From IMG/VR virus record IMGVR_UViG_3300048625_000299, positions 1-64,000 of that record: DNA of 64,000 nt. One strand, given 5' to 3'. The position numbers and the translations under genes were made by a program. Below, piece by piece: positions 24,922 to 37,641 of the stretch. Each line of letters opens with the position of its first letter. The first letter of the stretch is position 1. Under the pieces are notes generated by a model that saw only the letters and a program-made list of their open reading frames with translations, ran no database searches and had not been told where the DNA came from.

Positions 24922-24997
24922 GGTGTGTTCGTCTATCGGTTTAGGACGCTGCCCTTTCAAGGCGGAAAGACGAGTTCGATTCTCGTACGCACTACCA
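24922..24997 (+). tRNA. tRNA-Glu(TTC)
   Basis: Cloverleaf, TTCGA loop, CCA. Confidence 0.92.
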
Positions 24998-25119
24998 TTA
25001 ATTAAAATCTCTGTAAGCTCGGAGGCACAGTACATGCGTTATGTAACTATACTAATACGCCGTAATCGATCGTAAAGCGGTTGAGGTATAGCAAATAGTG
25101 CAGAGATTTTAATTAATGG
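24995..25119 (+). ncRNA. long-stem structured element S2
   Basis: CCATTAATTAAAATCTCTG / CAGAGATTTTAATTAATGG. Confidence 0.55.
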
Positions 25120-25123
25120 AAAT

Positions 25124-25200
25124 GCTTCGTTAGCTCAGTTGGTTAGAGCGCATGCCTGTCACGCATGAGGCCGTCGGTTCGAGCCCGATACGGGGCGCCA
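25124..25200 (+). tRNA. tRNA-Asp(GTC)
   Basis: Canonical cloverleaf, CCA. Confidence 0.95.
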
Positions 25201-25209
25201 AGTTATTTT

Positions 25210-25283
25210 ACCCGGATAGTTAAATGGTATAACGTGCGCTTGATAAGCGCTTATCGCAAGTTCGATTCTTGCTCTGGGTACCA
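25210..25283 (+). tRNA. tRNA-Ile(GAT)
   Basis: Cloverleaf, CCA. Confidence 0.9.
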
Positions 25284-25291
25284 AGTTTTAT

Positions 25292-25367
25292 ACCGTAGAG
25301 ATCCTCTGATGGGGATACCTCACTGTCTATGAGGATGTGGCGGGTTTGATTCCCGTCTACGGTGCCA
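25292..25367 (+). tRNA. tRNA-Asp(GTC), atypical
   Basis: All four arms pair; non-canonical D and T loops. Confidence 0.75.
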
Positions 25368-25371
25368 GTTT

Positions 25372-25442
25372 TAGAATAGTTACAGCAACACACAAAGAAC
25401 ACCAAACTTTTAATTTGACATGTTCGTCAACGCTATTCTGTT
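25372..25442 (+). ncRNA. stem-cassette RNA A (Lys-UUU anticodon-loop-like cargo)
   Basis: TAGAATAG-TTAC-AGCAA ... CTATTCTG-TT. Confidence 0.75.
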
Positions 25443-25448
25443 ATATTT

Positions 25449-25523
25449 GGGGACAGTAGTGGGCTACGGTTCTCCCTTGCAAGGAGGATGTCTAGAAGGA
25501 TTCGATTTCCTCGGTCTCCACCA
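25449..25523 (+). tRNA. tRNA-Ala(TGC), minimal D-arm
   Basis: G3:U70, TGC loop, CCA. Confidence 0.7.
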
Positions 25524-25532
25524 ATTTTTTAT

Positions 25533-25607
25533 ACTGCGTTCGACTTCAGGTGAGGTCATCACCCTTTCAAGGTGACTAGACGGGTTCGATACCCGTACGC
25601 AGTACCA
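25533..25607 (+). tRNA. tRNA-Glu(TTC)
   Basis: Cloverleaf, CCA. Confidence 0.9.
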
Positions 25608-25612
25608 GTTTT

Positions 25613-25687
25613 CGGTTGTAAGCTTTGATGGCGAAGTACCCGGCTCTTACCCGGATTAACGGAGTTCGATTCTCCGACGACCGACCA
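25613..25687 (+). tRNA. tRNA-Lys(CTT)
   Basis: Cloverleaf, CCA. Confidence 0.85.
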
Positions 25688-25691
25688 GTTT

Positions 25692-25813
25692 TAGGATACT
25701 TGCAGCAATGACTTAAAAGTCAGTAGGTTCGATTCCTACATTTGGAGCTTTCCAAATCCGTCGTAAGGTACGACAAACGATTGAAACTCGTTCAACTAAA
25801 AAGGTATCCTGTT
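25692..25813 (+). ncRNA. stem-cassette RNA B (permuted tRNA-Phe-like cargo)
   Basis: TAGGATAC-TTGC-AGCAA ... GTATCCTG-TT; cargo order V, T, acceptor, D, anticodon(GAA). Confidence 0.8.
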
Positions 25814-25821
25814 GTATTTGT

Positions 25822-25896
25822 AGGGGGCTTGTCGTCTGGTGATGACACTACGCTTTGACCGTAGGAAGATGAGTTCGATCCTCATGCCCCCCGCCA
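25822..25896 (+). tRNA. tRNA-Gln(TTG)
   Basis: Cloverleaf, CCA. Confidence 0.85.
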
Positions 25897-25929
25897 GTTT
25901 TTGTTTAACTAATTTAATGGAGGCAGTCT

Positions 25930-26064
25930 ATGAAAAAGACGAAACCGATCGTGCGCGAACGTAACTGCTTCGTTCGATTAGCACTATTCCGTAAAGCAGG
26001 ATCGCACCGCAAGTCTAACAAGGCATTGCGTAAAGCGATCAACCAATCATCGTTGGGTTTATAG
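25930..26064 (+). CDS. small basic protein (44 aa)
   Basis: GGAGG RBS; MKKTKPIVRERN...KAGSHRKSNK; stop lies inside tRNA-Lys. Confidence 0.6.
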   Translation: MKKTKPIVRERNCFVRLALFRKAGSHRKSNKALRKAINQSSLGL

Positions 26065-26131
26065 TTTAACGGCAAAAACATCTGGCTTTTAACCAGTAAG
26101 AGTCTCGGTTCGAATCCGAGTAGACCCACCA
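26055..26131 (+). tRNA. tRNA-Lys(TTT)
   Basis: Cloverleaf, CCA. Confidence 0.92.
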
Positions 26132-26210
26132 TATGAAAGCATACTACCGAAGTTGGTTCGGTTAGACAGGGAGATCCAATTGCCTATGTCGTTAGTGTGT
26201 TTTTATATGG
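26129..26210 (+). ncRNA. long-stem structured element S3
   Basis: CCATATGAAAGCATACTA / TAGTGTGTTTTTATATGG. Confidence 0.55.
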
Positions 26211-26273
26211 TACGTAATTTGAGTACAATGGTCACACGCCCTTGCTTAGATTACAAACGCCATAATAATTTAT

Positions 26274-26349
26274 TCCATCTTAGTATTCTCGGTGAGTACG
26301 CCCGGCTGTTAACCGGAGAAGGTTGGTTCGAATCCAACAGATGGAGCCA
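26274..26349 (+). tRNA. tRNA-Asn(GTT)
   Basis: Cloverleaf, CCA. Confidence 0.85.
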
Positions 26350-26354
26350 GTTAT

Positions 26355-26413
26355 GGGGCAAAAAGCGGATTCTGTCCAATGAATCTTTTGCAGCACACTG
26401 TAATGCCCCGCCA
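26355..26413 (+). ncRNA. 59-nt D-armless tRNA-like mini RNA
   Basis: GGGGCA/TGCCCC-GCCA acceptor plus two hairpins. Confidence 0.5.
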
Positions 26414-26417
26414 AATT

Positions 26418-26481
26418 TAGGATCCTTTCAGCAAAACTTATACTTTCACTTTTGGCTGTGAAAAGCAAAGCGGATCCTGTT
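26418..26481 (+). ncRNA. stem-cassette RNA C
   Basis: TAGGATCC-TTTC-AGCAA ... GGATCCTG-TT. Confidence 0.75.
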
Positions 26482-26487
26482 GAACAT

Positions 26488-26565
26488 GCCCACGTAGTGC
26501 AATTGGTAGGAGACAACGGTCTTAGAAGCCGAACAGTGTCGGTTCGAATCCGACCGTGGGCACCA
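26488..26565 (+). tRNA. tRNA-Leu(TAG), short variable loop
   Basis: Cloverleaf, A73, CCA. Confidence 0.88.
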
Positions 26566-26568
26566 AAT

Positions 26569-26637
26569 TTATACACAGATGTTGGTTCGATTCCAACCCT
26601 GATGAAGAGTAGCATAATATGGCAATGCAGTGTATAA
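26569..26637 (+). ncRNA. stand-alone permuted tRNA-elbow mimic
   Basis: TTATACAC / T-arm / short linker / D-arm / GTGTATAA. Confidence 0.55.
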
Positions 26638-26688
26638 TCCAAGCCTCGCGCTGACTTGTCGCGTATAATGAGATAAATTACAAGTCAC

Positions 26689-26791
26689 TTTTCTAGAGCA
26701 TATCGCGGCTGAGGCTAGGCCGTTATGTGGATCATAGCTGGGCCTTTCGGCTTGGTCGCCAGTTCAATTCTGGTAGATGTGTTCTAGAAAA
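26689..26791 (+). ncRNA. cloverleaf-like element S4 with extended terminal stem
   Basis: 16-bp closing stem, D-like arm, GCCAG-TTCAATT-CTGGT T-arm, no CCA. Confidence 0.5.
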
Positions 26792-26795
26792 GTTT

Positions 26796-26870
26796 GGGCT
26801 GATAGTGATAATGGGAGCACAGTGGCTTTGCAAGCCTCGGGTCGGGGTTCGATCCCCCGTCGGTCCACCA
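26796..26870 (+). tRNA. tRNA-Ala(TGC)
   Basis: G3:U70, CCA. Confidence 0.88.
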
Positions 26871-26879
26871 AATTTTAAT

Positions 26880-26956
26880 CCGTCCGTAGCACAATTGGAG
26901 AATGTTCCGTCCTACGAAGTCGAGAGGTGGGGGTTCGAATCCCTCCGGACGGACCA
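26880..26956 (+). tRNA. tRNA-Arg(ACG)
   Basis: Cloverleaf with weak anticodon stem, CCA. Confidence 0.82.
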
Positions 26957-27105
26957 TACTATAGTGTATTCTTCGTCATATGCGGGGTTTCAGGTTCCAC
27001 GTCAAATGTGCCAGAATGAGAATAGTCCTGCAGGTTAATGCTCAGGGTAACACATTAATACTTACAGACAGGTTGACACTTGTTTGGGAATGCATTATAA
27101 TATGG
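26954..27105 (+). ncRNA. long-stem structured element S5
   Basis: CCATACTATAGTGTATTCT / GGAATGCATTATAATATGG. Confidence 0.5.
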
Positions 27106-27110
27106 TTTAT

Positions 27111-27183
27111 GCGGGGTTAGTTTAGTGGTAAAACACTTTCCTTCCAAGTAAGAGTTGCGGGTTCGATTCCCGCACCCCGCTCC
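27111..27183 (+). tRNA. tRNA-Gly(TCC), no encoded CCA
   Basis: Canonical cloverleaf ending TCC-C. Confidence 0.9.
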
Positions 27184-27207
27184 CTTGAGTCGATGTCAAG
27201 ACTCGAA
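27182..27207 (+). repeat. 26-nt direct repeat, copy 1
   Basis: CCCTTGAGTCGATGTCAAGACTCGAA, identical to 28690-28715. Confidence 0.9.
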
Positions 27208-27223
27208 ACTTATAAATAAAAGT

Positions 27224-27763
27224 ATGGAAAAAACATACTATACAATTTATAAGATAACGAATCGGATTAATGGCAAGATCTATATTGGATCGCATAAGAC
27301 CAAAAATCTGAATGACAACTATATGGGTTCTGGAAAATACTTAAAGTATGCCCAAGACAAATATGGTATTGAAAAGTTTGAAAAAGAAATATTGTTCGTA
27401 TTTGATACGGCGCAAGAGATGTACGCTAAGGAAGCGGAAATTGTCAATGTTGAGTTCTTAGCTGAGCATAACACTTACAACATTAAAGTTGGAGGGTTTG
27501 GCGGTTGGGATCACATTAATAATGATGTAGAATTTCGTACGCAGAAAAATCAGCTAGCAAGGGCACGAGCTCAAGCTGCAGGGGCTTCGGATAAAGCAAA
27601 GTTATACAACACTGAACGGAGACGTCAGTATGATCTGAATCCAGCACGATGCGCTTCATGTAGCCAACCGCTTGATTTTTTAAAGCGCAAGAATAAATTC
27701 TGTGGGCATAGTTGTTCAGCTAAGTTGACCAACACCACTAGAGTTCGCAAATCGAACAAGTAA
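27224..27763 (+). CDS. GIY-YIG (Seg-like) homing endonuclease
   Basis: YTIYKITN...KIYIGSH, YMGSG, YN motif; late promoter at 27211. Confidence 0.9.
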   Translation: MEKTYYTIYKITNRINGKIYIGSHKTKNLNDNYMGSGKYLKYAQDKYGIEKFEKEILFVFDTAQEMYAKEAEIVNVEFLAEHNTYNIKVGGFGGWDHINNDVEFRTQKNQLARARAQAAGASDKAKLYNTERRRQYDLNPARCASCSQPLDFLKRKNKFCGHSCSAKLTNTTRVRKSNK

Positions 27764-27767
27764 GTTT

Positions 27768-27829
27768 TAGGATAGTTACCGCAATCAAAAAGCTAACTAT
27801 GGTTGTCTAGCGACAAAAGCTATCCTGTT
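27768..27829 (+). ncRNA. stem-cassette RNA D
   Basis: TAGGATAG-TTAC-CGCAA ... CTATCCTG-TT. Confidence 0.75.
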
Positions 27830-27836
27830 GATTAAT

Positions 27837-27918
27837 GGATGAGATGCTCTAATGGTAGGGCAGCGGGCTGTAACCCCGTGGCTTCGGCAAGTAGGTTCGA
27901 TCCCTACCTCATCCACCA
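27837..27918 (+). tRNA. tRNA-Tyr(GTA)
   Basis: Class II cloverleaf, CCA. Confidence 0.9.
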
Positions 27919-28104
27919 TTTAAGTGACCAGTTTCCGTAACAACTAGAGATGACTGGATCCATCATGATGAACAGTTACGGACGAAGCGTGGGAGTGGAA
28001 GAAGGTCTTGTTGTGTCTCCCGAAAATAAATGACGAAAGTCTTAGCGACAACGAGTAATATCAGTATAACCTAAGGGCGATGGCAAGCCTCTGATAGCCT
28101 TTAT

Positions 28105-28191
28105 GGACGTGTAGGAAAATTGGTAACCCCAGGAGACTGTAAATCTTCCGCCCGCAAGGCACTACTGGTTCGACTCCAGTCGCGTCCACCA
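28105..28191 (+). tRNA. tRNA-Tyr(GTA)
   Basis: Class II cloverleaf, CCA. Confidence 0.88.
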
Positions 28192-28193
28192 AA

Positions 28194-28376
28194 TTAATCG
28201 AATACAAATCTACAGTTGATTTGTTTTAACTGTCCGTCGAGTTTGAATTCAGTTTCGACTTTCGGATAGCAATCGGCAAATGTGCCAACGCAAGTAGACG
28301 TTTTAGTCTCTTTGTAAGGTTGACCATCAGCTAGCTTGTAAAGCAGTTTGAGGTTGTATTCATCATCATATGCCAT
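28194..28376 (-). CDS. small antisense-oriented protein (60 aa)
   Basis: GGAG upstream of ATG on the minus strand; exactly fills the gap between two tRNAs. Confidence 0.5.
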   Translation of the reverse strand: MAYDDEYNLKLLYKLADGQPYKETKTSTCVGTFADCYPKVETEFKLDGQLKQINCRFVFD

Positions 28377-28388
28377 AGAAATATTTAT

Positions 28389-28466
28389 CTCCGATTCGCC
28401 TAGTCTGGTATGGCACTTCGTTTGGGACGAAGAATAACGGGAGTTCAAATCTCTCATCGGAGACCA
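28389..28466 (+). tRNA. tRNA-Pro(TGG)
   Basis: Cloverleaf, CCA. Confidence 0.9.
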
Positions 28467-28618
28467 AGAATTAGTCGGAAAGCAAGAGCCGAAAAGTAAA
28501 TAGTAGGCGACCTAGCCACCTCGGTCGTCTTTGTAGTGTATACTGCGTCAGGGAGCCTGGAAGGGTAACTTGAGAAACACTGGGGTAAGAATCCCAATTG
28601 ATGGTGAGCGCAAATTTC

Positions 28619-28691
28619 CAGGGGGTATGATAGTGGTAGTCGCCGAGGTTTGGAACCTTGTAGTGGGAGTTCGATTCTCCCTCCCCTGACC
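28619..28691 (+). tRNA. tRNA-Pro(TGG), no encoded CCA
   Basis: Cloverleaf ending ACC-C. Confidence 0.85.
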
Positions 28692-28715
28692 CTTGAGTCG
28701 ATGTCAAGACTCGAA
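28690..28715 (+). repeat. 26-nt direct repeat, copy 2
   Basis: Identical to 27182-27207. Confidence 0.9.
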
Positions 28716-28726
28716 CGATTATAAAT

Positions 28727-29389
28727 ATGTGTATGTATTACACTGTTTATAAAACGACGAATAAGATTAATGGCAAGATCTATATTGGATCACATAAGAC
28801 CAAAAATCTTAATGATAATTACCTGGGTTCAGGTAAGTATTTGAAGCGTGCCATAGAAAAGTATGGAGTAGATTCTTTCACTAGGGAAATACTGTTCATA
28901 TTTGAAACAGCAGAGGAAATGTATGCTAAAGAGGCGGAGCTTGTGAACGCAGAGTTCCTAACTGAAGAAAATACATACAACCTCAAGGTTGGAGGTTTTG
29001 GTGGGTTTGACTATATAAATTCCAACCCCGAAAAATACCTAACGCCCAAGAGGCTTGCAGCGCTGATGCCTGGACATGAGTTGCAAAGGCGGCTGTGGGA
29101 AAAATATTATTCCGATCCTGCGTTTAGAGCCAAGCGCCAAGAGCAATCTAGACATGCTCTAAACGTAGCTAGAACAAAATCGCGTGCTCCCTTCAAAGGA
29201 CGCAAGCATTCGGATGTTGTAAAACAAAAAATAGCTGCAAAGGCTAGAGAAAGATCTGCAGATAATCCACAAGGAAACTCCCAGTATGGGACGATATGGA
29301 TTACAGATGGTGTTGAAAATAAGAAGATTAATAAAACTGATGTCTTACCAGATGGTTGGTATAGGGGCAGAGTTTTTAAAAAAGTATAA
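28727..29389 (+). CDS. GIY-YIG (Seg-like) homing endonuclease with NUMOD3-like segment
   Basis: YTVYKTTN...KIYIGSH; FKGRKHS; WITDG...GWYRGR; late promoter at 28720. Confidence 0.9.
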   Translation: MCMYYTVYKTTNKINGKIYIGSHKTKNLNDNYLGSGKYLKRAIEKYGVDSFTREILFIFETAEEMYAKEAELVNAEFLTEENTYNLKVGGFGGFDYINSNPEKYLTPKRLAALMPGHELQRRLWEKYYSDPAFRAKRQEQSRHALNVARTKSRAPFKGRKHSDVVKQKIAAKARERSADNPQGNSQYGTIWITDGVENKKINKTDVLPDGWYRGRVFKKV

Positions 29390-29390
29390 T

Positions 29391-29468
29391 GTCTGGGTGG
29401 CAGAGCGGCCCATTGCAACGGATTGCAAATCCGTAAAGTCGTCGGTTCAAATCCGACCCCAGATTCCA
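29391..29468 (+). tRNA. tRNA-Cys(GCA)
   Basis: U73, CCA. Confidence 0.9.
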
Positions 29469-29476
29469 ATTTTAAT

Positions 29477-29550
29477 GCGTGGTTAGTTTAATGGTAAAAT
29501 CAGACGTTGCCAACGTTTAGTTAAGGGTTCGATTCCCTTACCCCGCACCA
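29477..29550 (+). tRNA. tRNA-Gly(GCC)
   Basis: Cloverleaf, CCA. Confidence 0.88.
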
Positions 29551-29556
29551 GTTTAT

Positions 29557-29632
29557 GCTCCTTTCGTATAGTGATTTATTACATCGGTTTTGTAGTCCGA
29601 GAACAGCAGTTTGATTCTGCTAGGGAGCTCCA
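29557..29632 (+). tRNA. tRNA-Thr(TGT), atypical
   Basis: Cloverleaf, TTTGA T-loop, CCA. Confidence 0.78.
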
Positions 29633-29640
29633 GTTTATTT

Positions 29641-29716
29641 GCTCGCGAAGTATTAGTTGGTGGTATGCCGCTTTCGTAATGCGGAGGATCGGGTTCGAGG
29701 CCTGACGTGAGCACCA
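29641..29716 (+). tRNA. tRNA-Thr(CGT)
   Basis: Cloverleaf, CCA. Confidence 0.8.
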
Positions 29717-29720
29717 AAGT

Positions 29721-29940
29721 TTTGTAAGTGTCAGCAAGTGCAGTCACGCTAGTGATGGTAAGTTCGAACTACCTAACTAGTAAAAGGGGACGGGTTCAAC
29801 TCCCGGCTGATCGGAAGATCGGTGCAGATTGGTTGCTAACTGGACAGGTACCCAAGTGATATCCATCGCGTGACGGGGTCAGGCTAGGCGGCCGGTAGGT
29901 CCTGACTAAATCTACGATAAACGTGACGTAGGCTTACAAA
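29721..29940 (+). ncRNA. 220-nt structured RNA X with two T-loop-like hairpins
   Basis: TTTGTAAG-TGTC-AGCAA ... CTTACAAA; GTCACG/CGTGAC helix. Confidence 0.55.
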
Positions 29941-29949
29941 TTTAATTAT

Positions 29950-30024
29950 GGAGTAGTTAGTTTAGTGGCAAAACCGCGGGTTGTGATTCCGCTATCACGG
30001 GTTCGATTCCCGTACTTCTCCCCA
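29950..30024 (+). tRNA. tRNA-His(GTG)
   Basis: G-1:C73, CCA. Confidence 0.9.
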
Positions 30025-30141
30025 TATGAAAGTATTCTTGGTATAAGTCAAAGCGGAAGAAGAGACCCACGTGGATGCATACGCAACGGTCTCAGAGCTC
30101 AGTCTCCTTCTAGGCCTGCATTCGAGAGTGCTTTTATATGG
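30022..30141 (+). ncRNA. long-stem structured element S6
   Basis: CCATATGAAAGTATTCT / AGAGTGCTTTTATATGG. Confidence 0.55.
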
Positions 30142-30146
30142 CATAT

Positions 30147-30234
30147 GCCTCGGTGTTGGAATTTGGTAGACAAGCTAGAATGAGAGTCTAGTATCCGAAA
30201 GGATGTGTGGGTTCGATTCCCATCTGAGGCACCA
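30147..30234 (+). tRNA. tRNA-Leu(GAG)
   Basis: Class II cloverleaf, CCA. Confidence 0.9.
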
Positions 30235-30249
30235 ATTAAAAAGTACATT

Positions 30250-30325
30250 GCCTGTGTAGCTCCAATGGTAGAGCAGTGGATTGAAAATCCATGTGTTGCT
30301 GGTTCGAGTCCAGCCATAGGCACCA
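30250..30325 (+). tRNA. tRNA-Phe(GAA)
   Basis: Canonical, CCA. Confidence 0.95.
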
Positions 30326-30336
30326 AGTTTGACCAT

Positions 30337-30456
30337 TAGGTTCATTTCAGCAATCAAAATAATCTTTCTTAGAAAAAGAGGGTCTGGGTTCGAATCCCAG
30401 CGCGGAGTTGGTCTTCCGTGTGGTGTAAGGGTAGCACGAAAAAAGTTGAACCTGTT
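30337..30456 (+). ncRNA. stem-cassette RNA E (permuted tRNA, TAG anticodon)
   Basis: TAGGTTCA-TTTC-AGCAA ... TGAACCTG-TT; cargo order anticodon, T, acceptor, D. Confidence 0.82.
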
Positions 30457-30470
30457 AAAATAAATGCAAT

Positions 30471-30547
30471 GGCTCAGTAGTTCCAATTGGCAGAACGGCG
30501 GATTCCAAATCCGCGTGTTGGAGGTTCGAATCCTTCCTGGGTCGCCA
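30471..30547 (+). tRNA. tRNA-Trp(CCA)
   Basis: Canonical, G73, CCA; U11-A24. Confidence 0.95.
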
Positions 30548-30554
30548 AAAGTTT

Positions 30555-30656
30555 TAGGATAGTTACAGCAAAACAAAACGCTTGTCATTGGTTGACAATT
30601 TGCCTTCTAAGCAAACCTAGCAGGTTCAATTCCTGCAGCAAAACAACTATCCTGTT
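30555..30656 (+). ncRNA. stem-cassette RNA F (acceptor-less tRNA-Arg(TCT)-like cargo)
   Basis: TAGGATAG-TTAC-AGCAA ... CTATCCTG-TT; D, anticodon and T arms in normal order. Confidence 0.8.
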
Positions 30657-30665
30657 GATTATCAC

Positions 30666-30756
30666 GGAGAGCGAAGCAGACAGGCGCGCTGCCACCGCCT
30701 TGAAAGCGGCTGGATCCTGAAAGGGATTGGATTTCGAGTATACCCGCTCTCCGCCA
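30666..30756 (+). tRNA. tRNA-Ser(TGA), atypical T-arm
   Basis: Class II, G73, CCA. Confidence 0.8.
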
Positions 30757-30763
30757 AAATTAT

Positions 30764-30878
30764 GTCGCGATGGTGTAATGGTAGCACGCTATAAAAGGTG
30801 ATCCTGATTAGGATACGTGCAGCATACATTTTCCACTGTCAATGGAGATGCCCAGGTTCGATTCCTGGTCGCGACGCC
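30764..30878 (+). tRNA. tRNA-Asp(GTC) interrupted by a 42-nt insertion (30789-30830)
   Basis: GTCGCGA/TCGCGAC acceptor with D, anticodon and T arms intact; insert carries cassette motifs in swapped order. Confidence 0.75.
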
Positions 30879-30883
30879 TCTTT

Positions 30884-30989
30884 TAGGATGAATGCAGCAA
30901 CATAAAAACTCTTCCACCATTCAGGGAGGCCGGCCCGCAGGGGGCATGTCGTTGGGTTCGAGTCCCGGTCTTAGACACATCATCCTGTT
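30884..30989 (+). ncRNA. stem-cassette RNA H (T-arm-containing cargo)
   Basis: TAGGATGA-ATGC-AGCAA ... TCATCCTG-TT. Confidence 0.78.
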
Positions 30990-30998
30990 ATTCAATGT

Positions 30999-31074
30999 TC
31001 CCTCTTCGCCAAGTTGGTAAGGCATCGGATTTTGATTCCGACATTCGGTGGTTCGAGTCCATCAGGGGGAGCCA
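30999..31074 (+). tRNA. tRNA-Gln(TTG)
   Basis: Canonical, CCA. Confidence 0.93.
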
Positions 31075-31221
31075 AGTTTTTGCAGTCTTAGCCTGGAGCT
31101 AGGGTAAAGGGTGTTGCGGGTGGCATCGAGACTCTACGGAGATTCGAGCGTTAAAGTTATCACCGATAAACATCGTAGCGCAACTTCAATCAATATGTGG
31201 AGCCTGCTGCAGAATTAATAT

Positions 31222-31310
31222 GGAAGATACAGCTGTGTGGTCACAGCATCCGCCTGGAACGCGGACGGTTGGTTCTGCTGGCCGGAGTTCGACTCTCCTA
31301 TCTTCCTCCA
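31222..31310 (+). tRNA. tRNA-Ser(GGA)
   Basis: Class II, CCA. Confidence 0.82.
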
Positions 31311-31434
31311 TATAAAAGCTCTTTGAGCAGCTACACTGGAGTTCATCAAGTAACCGCCAAGTCGACTACGCGGTAAACGTTGCCAGGAAGTAGGGCTGCC
31401 ATGGATTCAAGTACCGCAGAGAGCCTCTATATGG
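31308..31434 (+). ncRNA. long-stem structured element S7
   Basis: CCATATAAAAGCTCT / AGAGCCTCTATATGG. Confidence 0.55.
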
Positions 31435-31520
31435 ACGATTACCTAGTCAGGGACTAGCACTGATTCGAAACCAGTTGGATTCAGAAATGGGTTGGGGTTC
31501 GATACCTCAGTCGTCCGCCA
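31433..31520 (+). tRNA. tRNA-Ser(CGA)
   Basis: Class II, G73, CCA. Confidence 0.85.
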
Positions 31521-31542
31521 TTCACAAATTAAGGGGATACCG

Positions 31543-31677
31543 ATGAAACGAAAAGATGTATTCGATAAGGCATATGGTAGTGTCCCCCATGAAGTTGGCT
31601 TCAATGTCGACCTAGATATTAATGTATTCAGAGGATTCAGGTATTATTACTTGAAGATGATACGTTTCTTTAGATAG
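31543..31677 (+). CDS. small hypothetical protein
   Basis: AAGGGG RBS, 44 aa. Confidence 0.55.
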   Translation: MKRKDVFDKAYGSVPHEVGFNVDLDINVFRGFRYYYLKMIRFFR

Positions 31678-31684
31678 GAGCATT

Positions 31685-31933
31685 ATGTCAAATGAGCAAC
31701 ACAAAGAACAACATTCCAAACGTCTGCATCAAAAAGAGACGCATGTTGCAAAGCAAGTAAAGATCGCTAAGGCGTATGGCATATCTGTTAAAGAGCCACA
31801 CAAGCTAGCAAAGCATAATGCAATGAATTGTGGAGATCCAAACTGCTTGATGTGTATGAATCCCCGCAAAGCATTTAATGAGAAGACGATTCAAGAACGT
31901 CGATTTGATCAGCCTTTAGCTCAAGGAGAGTAA
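31685..31933 (+). CDS. conserved phage hypothetical protein (CxxxxCxxC)
   Basis: AGGAG RBS; CGDPNCLMCMNPRK. Confidence 0.7.
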   Translation: MSNEQHKEQHSKRLHQKETHVAKQVKIAKAYGISVKEPHKLAKHNAMNCGDPNCLMCMNPRKAFNEKTIQERRFDQPLAQGE

Positions 31934-31934
31934 A

Positions 31935-32609
31935 ATGAAAAAGGTAATCGAGATTCGCGCTGCTGAAGGCGGCGACGATAGTAAATTATTCGTAAAGGAC
32001 CTAGCGCAAAGCTACGTCAAGTTCGCAGACCGCAAGGGCTGAACTACCCGCCTGATAGGTGAGTACCTCGGAGAGCTTCATATTGAAGTCAAGGGGTCTG
32101 ACTTATCCGGACTAGAAAACGAAGCAGGCGGGCATCGAATCCAAAGAGTTCCTCCGACGGAACGAAAAGGTAGAGTACATACTAGCACCGTCACGGTCGC
32201 TATCATTGATAGCGCATCCGAGATCAAGACGGAATCTATACCAGACCATGAATTAAAAGTGGAGTGGTATAGCGGGACGGGGGCTGGTGGGCAACATCGA
32301 AACAAGCATCAAAACAGTTGTAGACTAACACACATTCCAACTGGAATAGTAACTACTGCACAATGTCGTAGTAGAGAGAATAGTCTGAACGAAGCACGAT
32401 CGTCATTGACACATCGTGTGAACTCGTTGACTAAGGATGCGTTTCATAGTAATGTAGCCAGTAACAGAAAACAACAAGTTGGTTCTGGGATGCGTGGCGA
32501 TAAGATCAGGACATATCGTTTCCAAGATGATCGTGTGCAAGACCATAGAACCGATAAAGTAGTCAGCTTGAAGAAAGTGATGGCTGGCGCGTTTGATCTG
32601 TTTTGGTAA
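31935..32609 (+). CDS. class I peptide release factor-like protein with in-frame TGA at codon 36
   Basis: EIRAAEGG, HRIQRVPPTERKGRVHTS, GAGGQHRNK, KIRTY in one frame across TGA 32040-32042. Confidence 0.85.
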
Positions 32610-32628
32610 ACACAACAAAGGAAGTATA

Positions 32629-32820
32629 ATGGCAAATCGTATTAACGAGTTTGAAGAAGTAGTTTCAGCAATGCGTGCTGATTTCGAAAAGTTCTATGAT
32701 AAAGAAACTAATGCTGCTGGCGCTCGCGTCCGTAAGCATTGCCAAGCGCTGGCTGTTCTCTGTAAGGAAGTTCGTAAGGACGTCACTGAAGTGAAAGCTG
32801 CACGCGCTGCTGCAAAGTAA
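32629..32820 (+). CDS. histone H1-like (Hc1-type) small protein
   Basis: KFYDKETNAAGARVRK...KEVRKDV. Confidence 0.65.
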   Translation: MANRINEFEEVVSAMRADFEKFYDKETNAAGARVRKHCQALAVLCKEVRKDVTEVKAARAAAK

Positions 32821-32905
32821 TTCTGCTTGCAAGCTGATCTCGGTGCTCCCGTTCTCCCGAGTTAGAATAGCTGATAATGTTTCAGTAAGACGGGGCCAAA
32901 TTTAA

Positions 32906-32995
32906 GGTGCGGTCCCATAATGGTATTGGAGCGGATTGCTAATCCGTCGGTCGGCGAAAGCCGGCTTCTGAGTTCGAGTCTCAGTCGCACCGCCA
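32906..32995 (+). tRNA. tRNA-Ser(GCT)
   Basis: Class II, CCA. Confidence 0.9.
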
Positions 32996-33000
32996 GTTCT

Positions 33001-33090
33001 CCCGCTGTAGCTCAAGGAGAGCAGGGGGTCTTATAAGCCCTTAATCTAGATAAGGTCCAGGATGTGGTTCGATTCCACACAGCGGGACCA
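33001..33090 (+). tRNA. tRNA-Ile(TAT) with long variable region
   Basis: CTTATAA loop, A73, CCA. Confidence 0.8.
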
Positions 33091-33097
33091 AAAGTTT

Positions 33098-33300
33098 TAG
33101 GATCCATGCAGCAACATAAAATGCATTGAAAGCCTCGTGTTGGTGGTGCAAGTCCACCCTCCCTCACTAAGGGCACTTTATGGAGTGACCCGCCATACTA
33201 CTAAAGGATCGCAACCTGTAGTAATATCCAACGTATGGTATTGTGCCCTTAGTGAGGGAGTAGCTCAAGTAGTAGAGCAGAGTAAAAAGCGGATCCTGTT
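33098..33300 (+). ncRNA. stem-cassette RNA I (YrlA-like permuted module with 18-bp acceptor)
   Basis: TAGGATCC-ATGC-AGCAA ... GGATCCTG-TT; T-arm, CTCCCTCACTAAGGGCAC/GTGCCCTTAGTGAGGGAG, D-arm. Confidence 0.82.
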
Positions 33301-33307
33301 GTTTAAG

Positions 33308-33385
33308 GCCCAGGTAGTGCAATTGGTAGGAGACAACGGTTTCAAACGCCGTACAGTGTGGGTTCGAATCCCATCCTGGGCACCA
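33308..33385 (+). tRNA. tRNA-Leu(CAA), short variable loop
   Basis: Cloverleaf, CCA. Confidence 0.88.
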
Positions 33386-33400
33386 AATTGAAAGTTAATT

Positions 33401-33625
33401 ATGTTTAAGGTTTACTGGACAAGTGATGGTGGTGTACATGCAAGTACGTTCGACGGCTTGTCGGAAGCTATTAAAGAATGTGAAGTGTTACGTAAGGATG
33501 GAATGACCTTTGTTACGATGGTATCAGAGAATCCAAACTCAGTAGGCAAGCCTGGAGTAGATGCTGTCGTCGATGGCAAATGTCCAGACGGTGTAGATTA
33601 CACTTGGAAGAAGAGAAGAATATGA
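33401..33625 (+). CDS. conserved hypothetical protein
   Basis: FVTMVSENPNSVGKPGVD...YTWKKRR. Confidence 0.7.
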   Translation: MFKVYWTSDGGVHASTFDGLSEAIKECEVLRKDGMTFVTMVSENPNSVGKPGVDAVVDGKCPDGVDYTWKKRRI

Positions 33626-34329
33626 TCGGTCTAATTGGAAGAGGCGTTGTGGGTGGCGCAATCGAAAACGCCTACACTAAATTAAATCGTCCGCTTGTCG
33701 TTGTTGATAGGGGCGATGATTTCCGCGCACTCGACCAATGTACCATGATTTGGGTAGCTGTCCCCGAGTGGGAAATTGCTAATGTAGCAAGACAGGTCAC
33801 CAACCGCAATGCGCTGTATGTGATTAAGAGCACTGCAGTACCTGCTCAATTCGAAACGCTATTCAAGCGATTTGTATATGTGCCTGAATTTTTGACAGCA
33901 AAGAATGCCAACGCTGATTTCTTCAACCCACCGCTGCTTCCGATCGGAACAGATAATCAGCAAGATGCTGACATGGTGTTGGATGAGATGTTTGCATTGA
34001 ATGTATACTGCTATCATGCTAGATATGTGACAGTCGCTGAAGCGTCTGCCATTAAGTACTACGCAAATTCGTTCCTAGCAACAAAAGTGATATTCAACAA
34101 TCAGTTTGCGAACTATTGTGAAGACATGGGAGTTGAGTGGAATAAGATTGCAAGCGTTCTTGGTGAGGATACCCGACTCGGACATACGCACTGGCAAGTG
34201 CCTGGGCCTGATGGGCTGCCAGGATATGGGGGAGCATGCTTTCCGAAAGATGTCCGTGCATTGGTACATGCTACAGATCGGTTGACATTATTAGAACAAG
34301 TCGATATAATAAACAAATCGATGAGATAA
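33622..34329 (+). CDS. UDP-glucose/GDP-mannose dehydrogenase-like protein
   Basis: GRGVVG, IKST, PEFL, KYYANSFLATKV, GYGGACFPKD. Confidence 0.88.
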   Translation: MIGLIGRGVVGGAIENAYTKLNRPLVVVDRGDDFRALDQCTMIWVAVPEWEIANVARQVTNRNALYVIKSTAVPAQFETLFKRFVYVPEFLTAKNANADFFNPPLLPIGTDNQQDADMVLDEMFALNVYCYHARYVTVAEASAIKYYANSFLATKVIFNNQFANYCEDMGVEWNKIASVLGEDTRLGHTHWQVPGPDGLPGYGGACFPKDVRALVHATDRLTLLEQVDIINKSMR

Positions 34330-34333
34330 CAAT

Positions 34334-34408
34334 CTGGCGTTCGTTCAACGGATAGGACATTTCTCTTCTAAAGAAATTATGGGGGTTCGATTCCCTCACG
34401 CCGGACCA
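34334..34408 (+). tRNA. tRNA-Arg(TCT)
   Basis: Cloverleaf, CCA. Confidence 0.92.
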
Positions 34409-34413
34409 AATTT

Positions 34414-34488
34414 GCGTTCATAGTTCAACGGATAGAATTCAGTCTTCCGAAGTCTGAGATTGTGGTTCAATTCCACATGGACGCACCA
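34414..34488 (+). tRNA. tRNA-Arg(CCG)
   Basis: Cloverleaf, CCA. Confidence 0.88.
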
Positions 34489-34577
34489 TAATAAAACGTA
34501 AAAGCGGTGGTATGGGCCGGATCAACGAGCGAGTGCTTCCTACATGCAGGAGCGGCGATTGGTACGTTTTATTATGG
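34486..34577 (+). ncRNA. long-stem structured element S8
   Basis: CCATAATAAAACGTA / TACGTTTTATTATGG. Confidence 0.55.
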
Positions 34578-34722
34578 TAAGGTCACATCTGAAAAGAAAA
34601 CATCCCTTCGAAAAGGATTGTAGCAGTAAGACAAGATAAGCAGCGAGATTAGGTAGGTAAGGGATAGCGGCCCAACGTTACCACTTAGTTTGCTTAGTAA
34701 GGCGCACGAAAGGCAAACTGGC

Positions 34723-34751
34723 TTGACTTATCATAACTAATGAAGTATAAT
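34723..34751 (+). promoter_or_regulatory. sigma70 promoter
   Basis: TTGACT-N17-TATAAT. Confidence 0.7.
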
Positions 34752-34829
34752 GCGGCGGTAGTGCAATTGGTAGGAGACAAGAGACTTAAACCCTCTACAG
34801 TATGGGTTCGAATCCCATCCGCCGCACCA
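34752..34829 (+). tRNA. tRNA-Leu(TAA), short variable loop
   Basis: Cloverleaf, CCA. Confidence 0.88.
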
Positions 34830-34831
34830 AT

Positions 34832-34907
34832 GCGTTGGTAGCTCAATGGTTAGAGCAGTGGTCTCATAAACCATTGGTTACAGGTTCGAGTCCTGTCCGA
34901 CGCACCA
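34832..34907 (+). tRNA. tRNA-Met or Ile2 (CAT)
   Basis: Canonical, CCA. Confidence 0.92.
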
Positions 34908-34944
34908 TGTTATTTTTATGATGATTATTTTGAAAGGTGAATAT

Positions 34945-35715
34945 ATGACGAAGTTACACGAATTGCTGGCAGTTGAGAAAACACGCACATCAGCATCAAC
35001 GAAGATCTTGCAAGAGACTGTTCAGAAGTTCAGTAAATCTGAAATGTTCTCTGGTCAAGTTAAGACGTTGTCGATGATCGAAGACTCCCCAACAAACAAA
35101 GTGTTGGAAGCCACTGCTTATGAAGAGCGTGAGTTGCCAACAACTGTTGCAGAGACATTGAGCTATGCATTGAACATCTGGGCTACGGCTGAAGATGTGT
35201 TGATGCAAAAGAACTCAACCAACCAAACTGCTGTTGCAGACTTATTCTACAATGGCGAAGTGATCGCAGACAATGTTCCAGTTGATGAATTGCTCGGCTT
35301 GGAAAATCGTTTGGAAACATTGCGCAAAGTGTTTGAAGCAATGCCAACATTGTCTGCTGCAGTGTCTTGGGATCGTGACCTCCAATCAGGCCGTCAAGGC
35401 GCTTGGAAGGCAACTGATGTCGACAAGACAATCAAGACAGAAAAGACAACGGTGCCTGTTGTGTTGTACGAAGCAACTGACAAGCACCCAGCACAAGTTA
35501 AGGAAGTCAGTCAAGATAAGACTGTCGGTACTTTCAATATTGTGAAGTTCAGTGGCGCTGCTACATCTGCTCAAAAAGCAGAAGTGTTGGCAATCGTCGA
35601 TGAATTGCTCACTGAAGTGAAACAAGCACGTATGCGTGCAAACAGCGTTGATGCTGTCAATCGTCGAATTGGTCAAACATTGACTAAGTTGATCTTGGCT
35701 CCATTCAGCGTGTAA
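34945..35715 (+). CDS. uncharacterised helical protein upstream of a large ncRNA
   Basis: AAAGGTG RBS; MTKLHELLAVEK...ARMRAN; codon style resembles highly expressed genes. Confidence 0.8.
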   Translation: MTKLHELLAVEKTRTSASTKILQETVQKFSKSEMFSGQVKTLSMIEDSPTNKVLEATAYEERELPTTVAETLSYALNIWATAEDVLMQKNSTNQTAVADLFYNGEVIADNVPVDELLGLENRLETLRKVFEAMPTLSAAVSWDRDLQSGRQGAWKATDVDKTIKTEKTTVPVVLYEATDKHPAQVKEVSQDKTVGTFNIVKFSGAATSAQKAEVLAIVDELLTEVKQARMRANSVDAVNRRIGQTLTKLILAPFSV

Positions 35716-35735
35716 TGTAAAGAATTGTAAGTTTT

Positions 35736-36226
35736 TGAGGACAGCGTTATAGTTATCGTCAGATCGTAACGCACCTGATAACTCTAAATGTGGTGGTTCG
35801 AATCCATCCCCAAGCACAAATCGTAGTGATAGTATTATTTGTGCTTGGGTAGCCGAAGTGGTAGAGGCAAAGAGACGGGTGTAGAGATCAAGTATCGTTA
35901 TAGTAGTTGTATCGACCTCACAGACTTATTGTAAGGGTTTAACTTACCCGCCGGAGAGCTTATCCTTATACTAAACATATAAAGATAAACAAGATTATGC
36001 TGGTTCGAGTCCAGCCTGCGTCGCCAAAGTGATACGTAGATTGCTTTGGGACGCAGTGAGCAAATGGTAAAGCTGCTTGTTAATTAATACATCGTTATCG
36101 TAACGGCTCTAGTGTGCAAAACTAAGTTAAACGTGAAGAATCTTCACAAGAGACGCTTATACTCAACAGCTACGTTGTATAAGCGGTTCTTCTAAAGCGA
36201 TCTGTAAAAGATTTCTTCAGAAGAAT
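35736..36226 (+). ncRNA. ~500-nt structured RNA with two permuted tRNA modules
   Basis: T-arm, closed acceptor, D-arm modules at 35782-35875 and 35988-36081. Confidence 0.7.
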
Positions 36227-36228
36227 AT

Positions 36229-36303
36229 GGACGGTTATTTCAGCGGTAGAATATCACATTGACATTGTGAAGGTCACTGGTTCGATCCCAGTACCGTCCA
36301 CCA
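36229..36303 (+). tRNA. tRNA-Val(GAC)
   Basis: Cloverleaf, CCA. Confidence 0.92.
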
Positions 36304-36325
36304 TATTTTGAACATATATAATTGT

Positions 36326-36401
36326 AGCGGAGTGGAGAAGTGGTATCTCGTCAGTCTCATAAGCTGAAGATCGGTGGTTCGAATCCACCCTTTCGCAACC
36401 A
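36326..36401 (+). tRNA. tRNA-Met(CAT), initiator-like
   Basis: 1:72 mismatch, A11-U24, CCA. Confidence 0.85.
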
Positions 36402-36406
36402 AATAT

Positions 36407-36482
36407 TGGCATATAGCTCAGTCGGTAGAGCATTTGACTGTTAATCAAAGGGTCCCTGGTTCGAGCCCAGGTTTGCCAGCCA
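36407..36482 (+). tRNA. tRNA-Asn(GTT)
   Basis: Canonical, CCA. Confidence 0.95.
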
Positions 36483-36498
36483 ACGTAAAGGAATTGAA

Positions 36499-36579
36499 AT
36501 GAAATCAGAAGGTAGCGGTTACGCAGTCGAAGGTTGGGATGATATCACCAACGACGACCTCAATCCGATTGCAATTTAA
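36499..36579 (+). CDS. 26-aa acidic micro-protein
   Basis: AAGGA RBS; MKSEGSGYAVEGWDDITNDDLNPIAI. Confidence 0.4.
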   Translation: MKSEGSGYAVEGWDDITNDDLNPIAI

Positions 36580-36588
36580 TTCTCAAAC

Positions 36589-36664
36589 GCCGAAGTAGCA
36601 CAATTGGTAGTGCAGTGCTCTTGTAAAGCAAAGGTTGAGGGTTCAAGTCCTTTCTTCGGCACCA
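36589..36664 (+). tRNA. tRNA-Thr(TGT)
   Basis: Canonical, CCA. Confidence 0.93.
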
Positions 36665-36674
36665 AAAATTTAGA

Positions 36675-36745
36675 CGCGGGGAGTCAGGTGAGGAAGCAGT
36701 CTCATAAGCTCGTTTCAGAAGGTTCAAATCCTTCCCCCGCAACCA
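36675..36745 (+). tRNA. degenerate initiator-like tRNA-Met(CAT)
   Basis: CGCGGGG/CCCCGCA-ACCA, reduced D-arm. Confidence 0.65.
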
Positions 36746-36750
36746 CACAT

Positions 36751-36825
36751 GGTGATATGGCGTAGATGGATGCGCACTGGCTTCATAAGCCAAGGAGAGT
36801 GGTTCGATACCACTTATCACCACCA
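36751..36825 (+). tRNA. tRNA-Met(CAT)
   Basis: Cloverleaf, CCA. Confidence 0.85.
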
Positions 36826-36842
36826 ACACACAGGAGTTCGTT

Positions 36843-37031
36843 ATGTCAGATGGTGGAAAAGGGTCTGCACCAAGGCCTTTCAGTGTTAGCCAACAAGAAT
36901 GGGACAATCGCTGGGATGCGATCTTCTCGCGCGATCTTGATAAGAAACAAGAAGCACAGGAGAAGATTGAAATGCCAGGCACCACAGGTGGTGCAAAGAT
37001 CGTTTTTCCCGAAGACGAATCCAACAAATAA
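36843..37031 (+). CDS. conserved small phage protein
   Basis: AGGAG RBS; GGKGSAPRP...WDAIF. Confidence 0.7.
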   Translation: MSDGGKGSAPRPFSVSQQEWDNRWDAIFSRDLDKKQEAQEKIEMPGTTGGAKIVFPEDESNK

Positions 37032-37044
37032 TTAAATACCAAAA

Positions 37045-37080
37045 TAGTAGACCTTATAAATAAAAAGAAAAGGTCTACTA
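37045..37080 (+). promoter_or_regulatory. late promoter within a start-codon-sequestering hairpin
   Basis: TAGTAGACCTT...AAGGTCTACTA with TATAAATA at 37055. Confidence 0.75.
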
Positions 37081-37499
37081 TGAAAACATATAAATGTGTT
37101 TCGTGTGGTGTTGATGCTAAATTTGGGTATAGCAAGCTGAATAAGTTTTGCAGTAATATATGCCAAGGAGCATTTAAATGGCTCACGGAAACTGTTCCTC
37201 GTATTGAGCGAGGTGAGTGTGGGGAAGCTTCTACACTTAGAAAGTATTTAATTGAAAAGCACAGTGAGTGCTGTACACAATGTGGTACGACAGGCACTTG
37301 GCAAGATAAGCCACTAACGTTGCACGTTGACCATATAGATGGAAACAGCGATAATAATACAACAGATAATTTGAGACTGCTATGTCCTAACTGTCATTCC
37401 CAAACGGACACATGGGGAAGCAAGGGGCACGGTAGCAGACTCAAGAAGCAGTCTAAGCGTGCTATAAGCAGCAGACTGTATAGAGGTATGCCTCGGTAG
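37080..37499 (+). CDS. HNH homing endonuclease
   Basis: HVDHIDGNSDNN...LCPNCHSQT. Confidence 0.9.
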   Translation: MKTYKCVSCGVDAKFGYSKLNKFCSNICQGAFKWLTETVPRIERGECGEASTLRKYLIEKHSECCTQCGTTGTWQDKPLTLHVDHIDGNSDNNTTDNLRLLCPNCHSQTDTWGSKGHGSRLKKQSKRAISSRLYRGMPR

Positions 37500-37563
37500 T
37501 TTAATGGTAGAACGCCATCCTTACACGGTGGATACGGGAGTTCAATTCTCCAACGAGGTACCA
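37490..37563 (+). tRNA. tRNA-Val(TAC)
   Basis: Cloverleaf, CCA; overlaps HNH stop. Confidence 0.88.
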
Positions 37564-37567
37564 AATT

Positions 37568-37641
37568 GCTCTTGTCGTATAGTGACATTACACATCCTTG
37601 GTACGGATGTTACACGAGTTTGATTCTCGTCGAGAGCACCA
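37568..37641 (+). tRNA. tRNA-Thr(GGT)
   Basis: Cloverleaf, CCA. Confidence 0.82.

Follow-up and report, generated by a model that had tools for sequence, protein, structure and literature searches.

Can an intact release factor be made from a gene that is interrupted, in frame, by a stop codon? We asked this of a gene in a 64,000-nucleotide stretch of phage DNA (the window), positions 1 to 64,000 of the IMG/VR record IMGVR_UViG_3300048625_000299. The initial annotation of this sequence described a release-factor homologue that opens with an ATG at 31935 behind a GGAG ribosome-binding site, meets a TGA at 32040-32042, and continues in the same frame to 32609. It proposed that the full protein is made only by read-through of the UGA, that this would sense impaired termination by RF2, and that the product would be a rescue or termination factor. 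We found that the observation holds. The interpretation was only partly supported: the dependence on read-through is well supported by comparative evidence, but the kind of factor, the sensing role and the analogy to prfB are not, or only in part.

We first confirmed the anatomy of the gene. The parts of the gene, and the tRNA-Trp gene and tRNA cluster described below, are on the plus strand. A Shine-Dalgarno-like GGAG is at 31925-31928, 6 nt before the ATG at 31935. Thirty-five sense codons follow (31935-32039), then TGA at 32040-32042 (codon 36), then 188 sense codons in the same frame (codons 37-224) and TAA at 32607-32609 (32043-32609 in all). A mechanical list of open reading frames shows only 32259-32609 (116 aa, starting with GTG), as the initial annotation had stated. 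An upstream ORF of 82 aa ends with TAA at 31931-31933, and relatives also have an in-frame stop a few codons upstream. Domain 1 of a release factor is therefore truly absent and cannot be encoded upstream.

Both pieces of the gene match domains 2-4 of the bacterial termination factor RF1. Codons 1-35 match positions 103-134 of the Pfam PCRF profile (E = 1.5e-7), and the downstream piece matches PCRF positions 153-194 followed by the RF-1 (GGQ) domain (E = 8.7e-21). Among NCBIfam profiles RF1 ranked first, with 196 bits over prfA positions 107-333 of 347 (157-332 for the downstream piece), compared to 116 bits for RF2, 41.6 bits for PrfH (cut-off 166.65) and a marginal 17.6 bits for ArfB (cut-off 100). 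A profile built from 28 relatives matched solved RF1 chains at 188 bits, RF2 at 117 and PrfH at 44, and it placed the stop on the Trp of 'ERKGW' in Thermotoga maritima RF1. An AlphaFold model of a relative (pLDDT 80) superposed on ribosome-bound RF1 with a TM of about 0.8 over domains 2-4. In the model, the first 35 codons form a strand (residues 2-11) and a helix (14-34). These correspond to the first strand and helix alpha-5 of domain 2, with the conserved E-G-G-[DE]-[DE] helix tip that helps read the first base of the stop codon. P73-P74-T75 (32151-32159), Q70, H82-T83 and G118-G119-Q120 (32286-32294) were invariant in the 28 relatives, and the KIRTY motif is present as first described. With the helix tip, the PxT tripeptide (here P-P-T, the RF1 type and not the SPF of RF2), Q70 and H82-T83 are the elements that read UAA and UAG in RF1, and GGQ is the catalytic motif. 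The match falls short of full-length prfA, which has about 355 residues including domain 1 and a cut-off of 400 bits. We therefore call this protein RF1-type or RF1-like and not prfA.

The initial annotation had compared the absence of domain 1 to PrfH-like factors. The protein is not PrfH-like in family terms, given the scores above, and no RtcB gene, the expected partner of a PrfH gene, was seen among the neighbors examined. It keeps the full set of stop-codon-reading elements, so it looks like a codon-dependent terminator and not a rescue factor.

The window is the first part of a 234,864-bp contig of a T4-like phage. It encodes a portal, scaffold and major head protein, a gp43-type DNA polymerase, clamp loader, UvsX, helicases, primase and the RegA translational repressor. 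The head protein is closest to those of phages of Stenotrophomonas (74%), Methylophilales (68%) and Sinorhizobium (67%), pointing to a proteobacterial host with the standard genetic code. The release-factor gene is inside a cluster of about 41 tRNA genes (24922-37641), 40 found with ARAGORN and one more, at 31222-31306, found with Rfam. In relatives the gene is also found among tRNA genes. There was no conserved operon partner; the neighbors varied, apart from a small upstream ORF in 42 of 85 relatives. A search for promoters and terminators near the gene gave nothing useful. We found no near-identical DNA in isolated phages, no close homologue in isolated phages of the GenBank collection, and no close relative in 185,579 species-representative genomes.

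The simplest explanation for an in-frame stop is an error or a broken gene, as a single transition separates TGG from TGA. The initial annotation had named this beforehand as the outcome that would defeat its proposal, with homologues carrying TGG. We tested it with three scans of IMG/VR and look-ups of database proteins, which gave 247 loci. TGA was at the homologous codon in 47 of 47, then 98 of 98, and finally 124 of 124 distinct gene sequences with the main architecture, from independent assemblies. None had TGG. This is far beyond chance. Database proteins of 222-226 aa that appear intact, with Trp at this position, come from DNA with TGA for which the gene caller had chosen genetic code 4. 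A second class of 173-187 aa comes from calls that begin after the stop.

Both parts of the gene are under purifying selection. Pooled Nei-Gojobori estimates over 45 distinct sequences gave a dN/dS of 0.105 for codons 1-35 and 0.087 from codon 37 to the end, with synonymous differences near saturation (0.67-0.73 per site). The sharpest control is internal to the 124 sequences. All 12 conserved Lys, Glu and Gln columns are polymorphic for A and G at the third position, with minor forms at 13-48%. In contrast, codon 36 is always TGA, and the two other conserved Trp columns are TGG in 123 and 122 of 124 and never TGA. That is, TGA and TGG are not interchangeable in these phages, in either direction. 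These results rule out a sequencing error, a private mutation or a pseudogene.

We next asked if the phage reads TGA as a sense codon more generally. RF1 is the factor expected in a TGA-recoding phage (Borges 2021 preprint), and a suppressor tRNA could be encoded outside the window, which covers 64 of the 235 kb. On this view the phage would switch UGA to Trp late in infection and the release-factor gene would simply be one recoded gene. We consider this very unlikely. In the window, 23 of 74 long ORFs end in TGA, nine of them in ATGA overlaps with the next start, and across all loci 173 of 566 distinct ORFs (31%) end in TGA. The late portal gene ends in TGA, and the portal, scaffold, major head protein and polymerase genes have no internal TGA. 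Only the release-factor gene has an internal TGA in the window. None of the 40 ARAGORN tRNAs has a stop-reading anticodon. Two tRNAs with unusual shapes, at 31222-31306 (anticodon GGA) and 33001-33090 (anticodon UAU), were inspected by hand and cannot read UGA. No suppressor anticodon was found among 922 tRNA calls around relatives.

Selenocysteine insertion is not supported either. A tRNA with a tRNA-Sec-like shape lies 630 nt upstream of the gene, but it is the one at 31222-31306 with anticodon GGA, not UCA. RNAalifold found no shared hairpin after the stop, making a SECIS element unlikely, and the site aligns to Trp and not to Cys.

Other routes past the stop appear closed. The +1 and -1 frames close within 4 and 8 codons of the stop, respectively, which rules out a frameshift. 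It is also possible that translation ends at the UGA and restarts a few codons downstream, giving a 35-residue peptide and a protein of about 184 residues that act separately or assemble. Gene callers place starts at codons 40-41, giving products of 183-187 aa, codon 41 is almost always ATA and codon 40 often CTG, and both parts are under selection. However, an in-frame ATG, GTG or TTG within 15 codons after the stop was present in only 27 of 124 genes, at scattered positions, and an SD-like core near the stop in 2 of 124. The window has no such start before 32259. In addition, the two parts are collinear and in frame with one RF1 domain, the stop replaces a residue of that domain, a product starting after the UGA would lack the helix alpha-5 element, and uninterrupted relatives exist. 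We consider a split gene very unlikely. This leaves in-frame read-through as the only open route to a protein that contains both selected halves.

More distant relatives indicate that versions without the stop are viable. An exhaustive search of 1.84 billion representative proteins revealed other short RF1-like clusters at 35-50% identity, and we looked up the DNA behind several of these types (P numbers; loci are L numbers). Types P0127 (L164, L165) and P0144 (L169) have TGA at the homologous site, and P0123 (L168) has TGA offset by a three-residue insertion. P0125 (L162, L163) has TGG at the site and a TGA four codons further on. Four types are uninterrupted: P0121 (L161) and P0129 (L166) have TGG, P0124 (L245, L246) has Ala, and P0149 (L247) has Leu. 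A search of viral contigs for the P0125-type clade found nothing. In a maximum-likelihood tree all of these types form one clade with 99/95 support, apart from other short RF-like clusters and cellular RF1. TGA is present from the deepest split to the crown, and the uninterrupted and shifted versions are nested, although on very long branches that make their exact placement unsure. The simplest reading is an old gate with a few losses and one relocation, and the relocation suggests selection for a gate as such. Either way, sense-codon versions are viable, and we conclude that the stop elsewhere is kept by selection.

The sequence around the stop is also constrained. Among the 124 genes, the codon before the stop is Gly (GGY) in 119. 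The next base is A in 91, G in 27, C in 6 and never T, compared to T in 41 of 173 genuine TGA terminators, although this may simply reflect the amino acids allowed at residue 37. The final stop is TAA in 117 of 124. In the main clade, the five codons after the stop (32043-32057 in the window, ACT ACC CGC CTG ATA) are constrained at silent sites. ACC outnumbers ACT 67 to 8, CGC is 95 of 110 Arg codons, and ATA is 85 of 88 Ile codons, compared to 37% ATA elsewhere in the same genes. This run is a candidate read-through context, but it is absent from deeper clades, whereas Gly-UGA followed by A, G or C is general. No 3' stimulatory element is conserved across all clades, and no consensus hairpin was found.

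Based on these results we infer that the gene is expressed by programmed read-through of the UGA, with a probability of roughly 70%. In this view, most ribosomes would stop at codon 36 through host RF2 and release a 35-residue peptide, and a minority would read the UGA, most likely with tRNA-Trp(CCA) from the host or the phage, and complete the 224-residue factor. UGA is the leakiest stop in bacteria and is read at a low level as Trp. In Bacillus subtilis, read-through of one UGA rose from 6% to 19-54% in prfB mutants (PMC7918605, citing Karow 1998). The phage has its own tRNA-Trp(CCA) at 30471-30547, 1.4 kb upstream, with U11-A24 in the D-stem, and A24 is the change in the Escherichia coli Hirsh UGA suppressor (PMC13092985). 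However, A24 is common in natural tRNA-Trp, and 2 of 11 neighboring phage tRNA-Trp genes have C11-G24, including one from a contig whose release factor is 96% identical to that of the window. We therefore regard A24 as permissive only and not as a specific adaptation. What the analysis establishes is the anatomy, the family assignment, selection on both halves and on the stop itself, and, within the sequence available, the lack of a frameshift route, a general recoding, a nearby suppressor tRNA and a restart signal. That read-through occurs, that Trp is inserted, that the protein has release activity (at UAA and UAG but not UGA), and the purpose of the arrangement are inferred from sequence comparison.

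The output of the factor would then follow the ratio of tRNA-Trp decoding to RF2 termination. As an RF1-type factor, the product should not act on its own gate, and control would be by the other release factor. We favor the notion that when RF2 runs short during infection, more RF1-type factor is made and takes over UAA (61% of phage stops), freeing RF2 for UGA (31%). That the gate senses impaired RF2, as first proposed, is a reasonable inference, but only that. A plain attenuator, in which the UGA keeps a potentially harmful factor lacking domain 1 very low and roughly constant, fits the conservation data equally well and explains the findings nearly as well. It is consistent with the lack of a universal stimulatory element, and the uninterrupted versions, on long branches, may have a changed role. 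UGA is also the leakiest stop in general, and its exclusive use need not reflect release-factor specificity. We nonetheless consider this alternative unlikely. A weak ribosome-binding site or promoter would attenuate as well, yet an SD-like GGAG is kept. The gate uses only the stop that an RF1-type product should not read, and it was apparently re-created four codons away in one lineage. In addition, UGA read-through is known to vary with RF2 activity, making some dependence on RF2 hard to avoid.

A stronger version of the model, which is tentative and not favored, is that these phages carry a cross-wired termination sensor. Synthesis of the RF1-type factor would be set in real time by the RF2 activity of the host relative to tRNA-Trp, through a selected UGA that the product itself would not read. 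This would be the mirror image of prfB autoregulation, would have arisen independently of the analogous read-through in giant-virus eRF1 genes, and appears to have been re-created at a neighboring codon in at least one lineage. The main-clade sequence RCU ACC CGC CUN AUA would then be a new bacterial read-through signal.

Programmed in-frame read-through is well documented in eukaryotic and RNA viruses, but few cases are known in bacteria and their DNA phages. Full-text literature searches found no report of an in-frame UGA in a phage RF1-type gene, within the library searched. The family described here includes at least 124 distinct genes, on phage contigs of up to 524 kb, in which comparative data alone show selection for the stop itself. 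It offers a simple system for asking how UGA leakiness depends on RF2, tRNA-Trp and 3' context in bacteria, what an RF1 without domain 1 can do, and why phages with large tRNA sets also carry termination factors. There is also a practical consequence. Gene callers either truncate this gene to 173-187 aa or silently translate it with code 4, and the latter plants false 'Trp' proteins and false code-4 signals in databases.

Several known systems share parts of this arrangement. PrfH and ArfB are short release-factor homologues with a GGQ domain, and PrfH also lacks domain 1, but the phage protein scores far below both family cut-offs and keeps the RF1 codon-reading elements. Huge phages and the TGA-recoded Jade phages encode RF1 near tRNA and other translation genes, in the Jade phages within a 'code-change' operon. 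Their RF1 genes are full-length and uninterrupted, and the Jade phages recode TGA genome-wide in late genes and carry a tRNA(UCA) and a TrpRS, whereas here TGA remains a terminator. The RNA phage Q-beta makes its A1 protein by low-level decoding of the coat-gene UGA as Trp by ordinary tRNA-Trp in a bacterium with the standard code. In Q-beta, however, the stop is the true end of an abundant functional protein and read-through adds an extension, whereas here the stop is inside a single folded domain and the short product would be a 35-residue fragment.

The two closest systems are themselves release-factor genes. The class-I release-factor genes Mimivirus R726 and Megavirus mg280 have a strictly conserved UGA read-through stop aligned to a Trp, and the virus carries a tRNA-Trp with an A in the D arm like the Hirsh suppressor (PMC3521657). 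Those genes encode eukaryotic/archaeal-type eRF1 homologues in viruses of amoebae and also need a +1 frameshift, and since eRF1 reads all three stops, autoregulation is possible there. The phage factor is a bacterial RF1 without domain 1, in tailed phages, with a single recoding event. Bacterial prfB, encoding RF2, is also interrupted early by a conserved in-frame UGA (codon 26, compared to codon 36 here), and its expression depends on how well RF2 terminates at that codon (10.1101/2024.09.24.614795). The initial annotation had drawn this analogy, and it holds only in part. prfB uses a +1 frameshift at a CUU-UGA-C slippery site with an internal SD, neither of which is conserved in the phage genes, where the zero frame continues and the +1 frame closes after 4 codons. 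RF2 regulates its own synthesis, whereas the phage product, being RF1-type, should not read the codon that gates it.

We found that two of the tRNA genes near the RF gene have unusual shapes. The tRNA gene at 31222-31306 (+) of the window was missed by ARAGORN but was found by Rfam. It has a tRNA-Sec or allo-tRNA-like shape, with an 8-bp acceptor stem, a 6-bp D stem, a long variable arm and a 4-bp T stem (RF01852, 44.6 bits against a cut-off of 47). However, its anticodon is GGA (Ser UCY), not UCA. The second, at 33001-33090 (+), is a 90-nt tRNA with a long variable arm (class-II size), discriminator A73 and the anticodon UAU, which reads AUA. That shape is unusual for tRNA-Ile. The RF gene keeps an almost invariant ATA five codons after the gate (the in-frame UGA). 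In addition, in the relative at locus L051, ARAGORN reported a 91-nt 'tRNA-???' with a two-base anticodon (941-1031), but its fold was not better than that of shuffled sequence.

We also compared silent-site diversity along the RF gene. In codons 31-60 (window 32025-32120), diversity dipped to 0.43-0.59 of the maximum. In contrast, it was about 0.8 in most of the gene. The dip extends beyond the five codons after the stop. No structure or overlapping ORF was identified in this region.

Public gene calls treat this gene in two wrong ways, as seen in the protein database entries P0004-P0120 and at loci L051-L055. Some calls truncate the gene to 173-187 aa, starting after the stop. Others give a product of 222-226 aa with a false Trp, because the gene caller had chosen code 4 on short contigs. 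Such entries could mislead surveys of alternative genetic codes.

The most frequent neighbor of the RF gene is a small ORF of about 55-75 aa that carries the conserved motif D-G-[LK]-C-P-D-G-V-x-Y-x-W. It has no Pfam or PHROG match. In the window it is at 33401-33625 (+), and it is upstream of the RF gene in 42 of 85 relatives (e.g., 48-218 in the relative at locus L010). In one relative the gene directly upstream of the RF gene is a peptidyl-tRNA hydrolase (PTH2), and in another an RNaseH-like gene lies downstream (relative of database protein P0008, Logan ERR10034880; L051, 4151-4624). Thus, further translation or RNA quality-control genes sit in some of these clusters.

Several other protein-coding genes are present in this part of the window. 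Two SegE-like GIY-YIG homing endonuclease genes and one HNH endonuclease gene are interspersed among the tRNA genes (27224-27763, 28727-29389 and 37080-37499, all +). A DUF7873 protein (E 9e-70) and a truncated-looking UDP-glucose dehydrogenase-like protein are also encoded inside the tRNA cluster (34918-35715 and 33622-34329, both +). Directly after the RF gene, at 32629-32820 (+), is a gene encoding a 63-aa histone H1-like Hc1 protein (Pfam PF07432, E 7e-17), an unusual gene for a T4-like phage.
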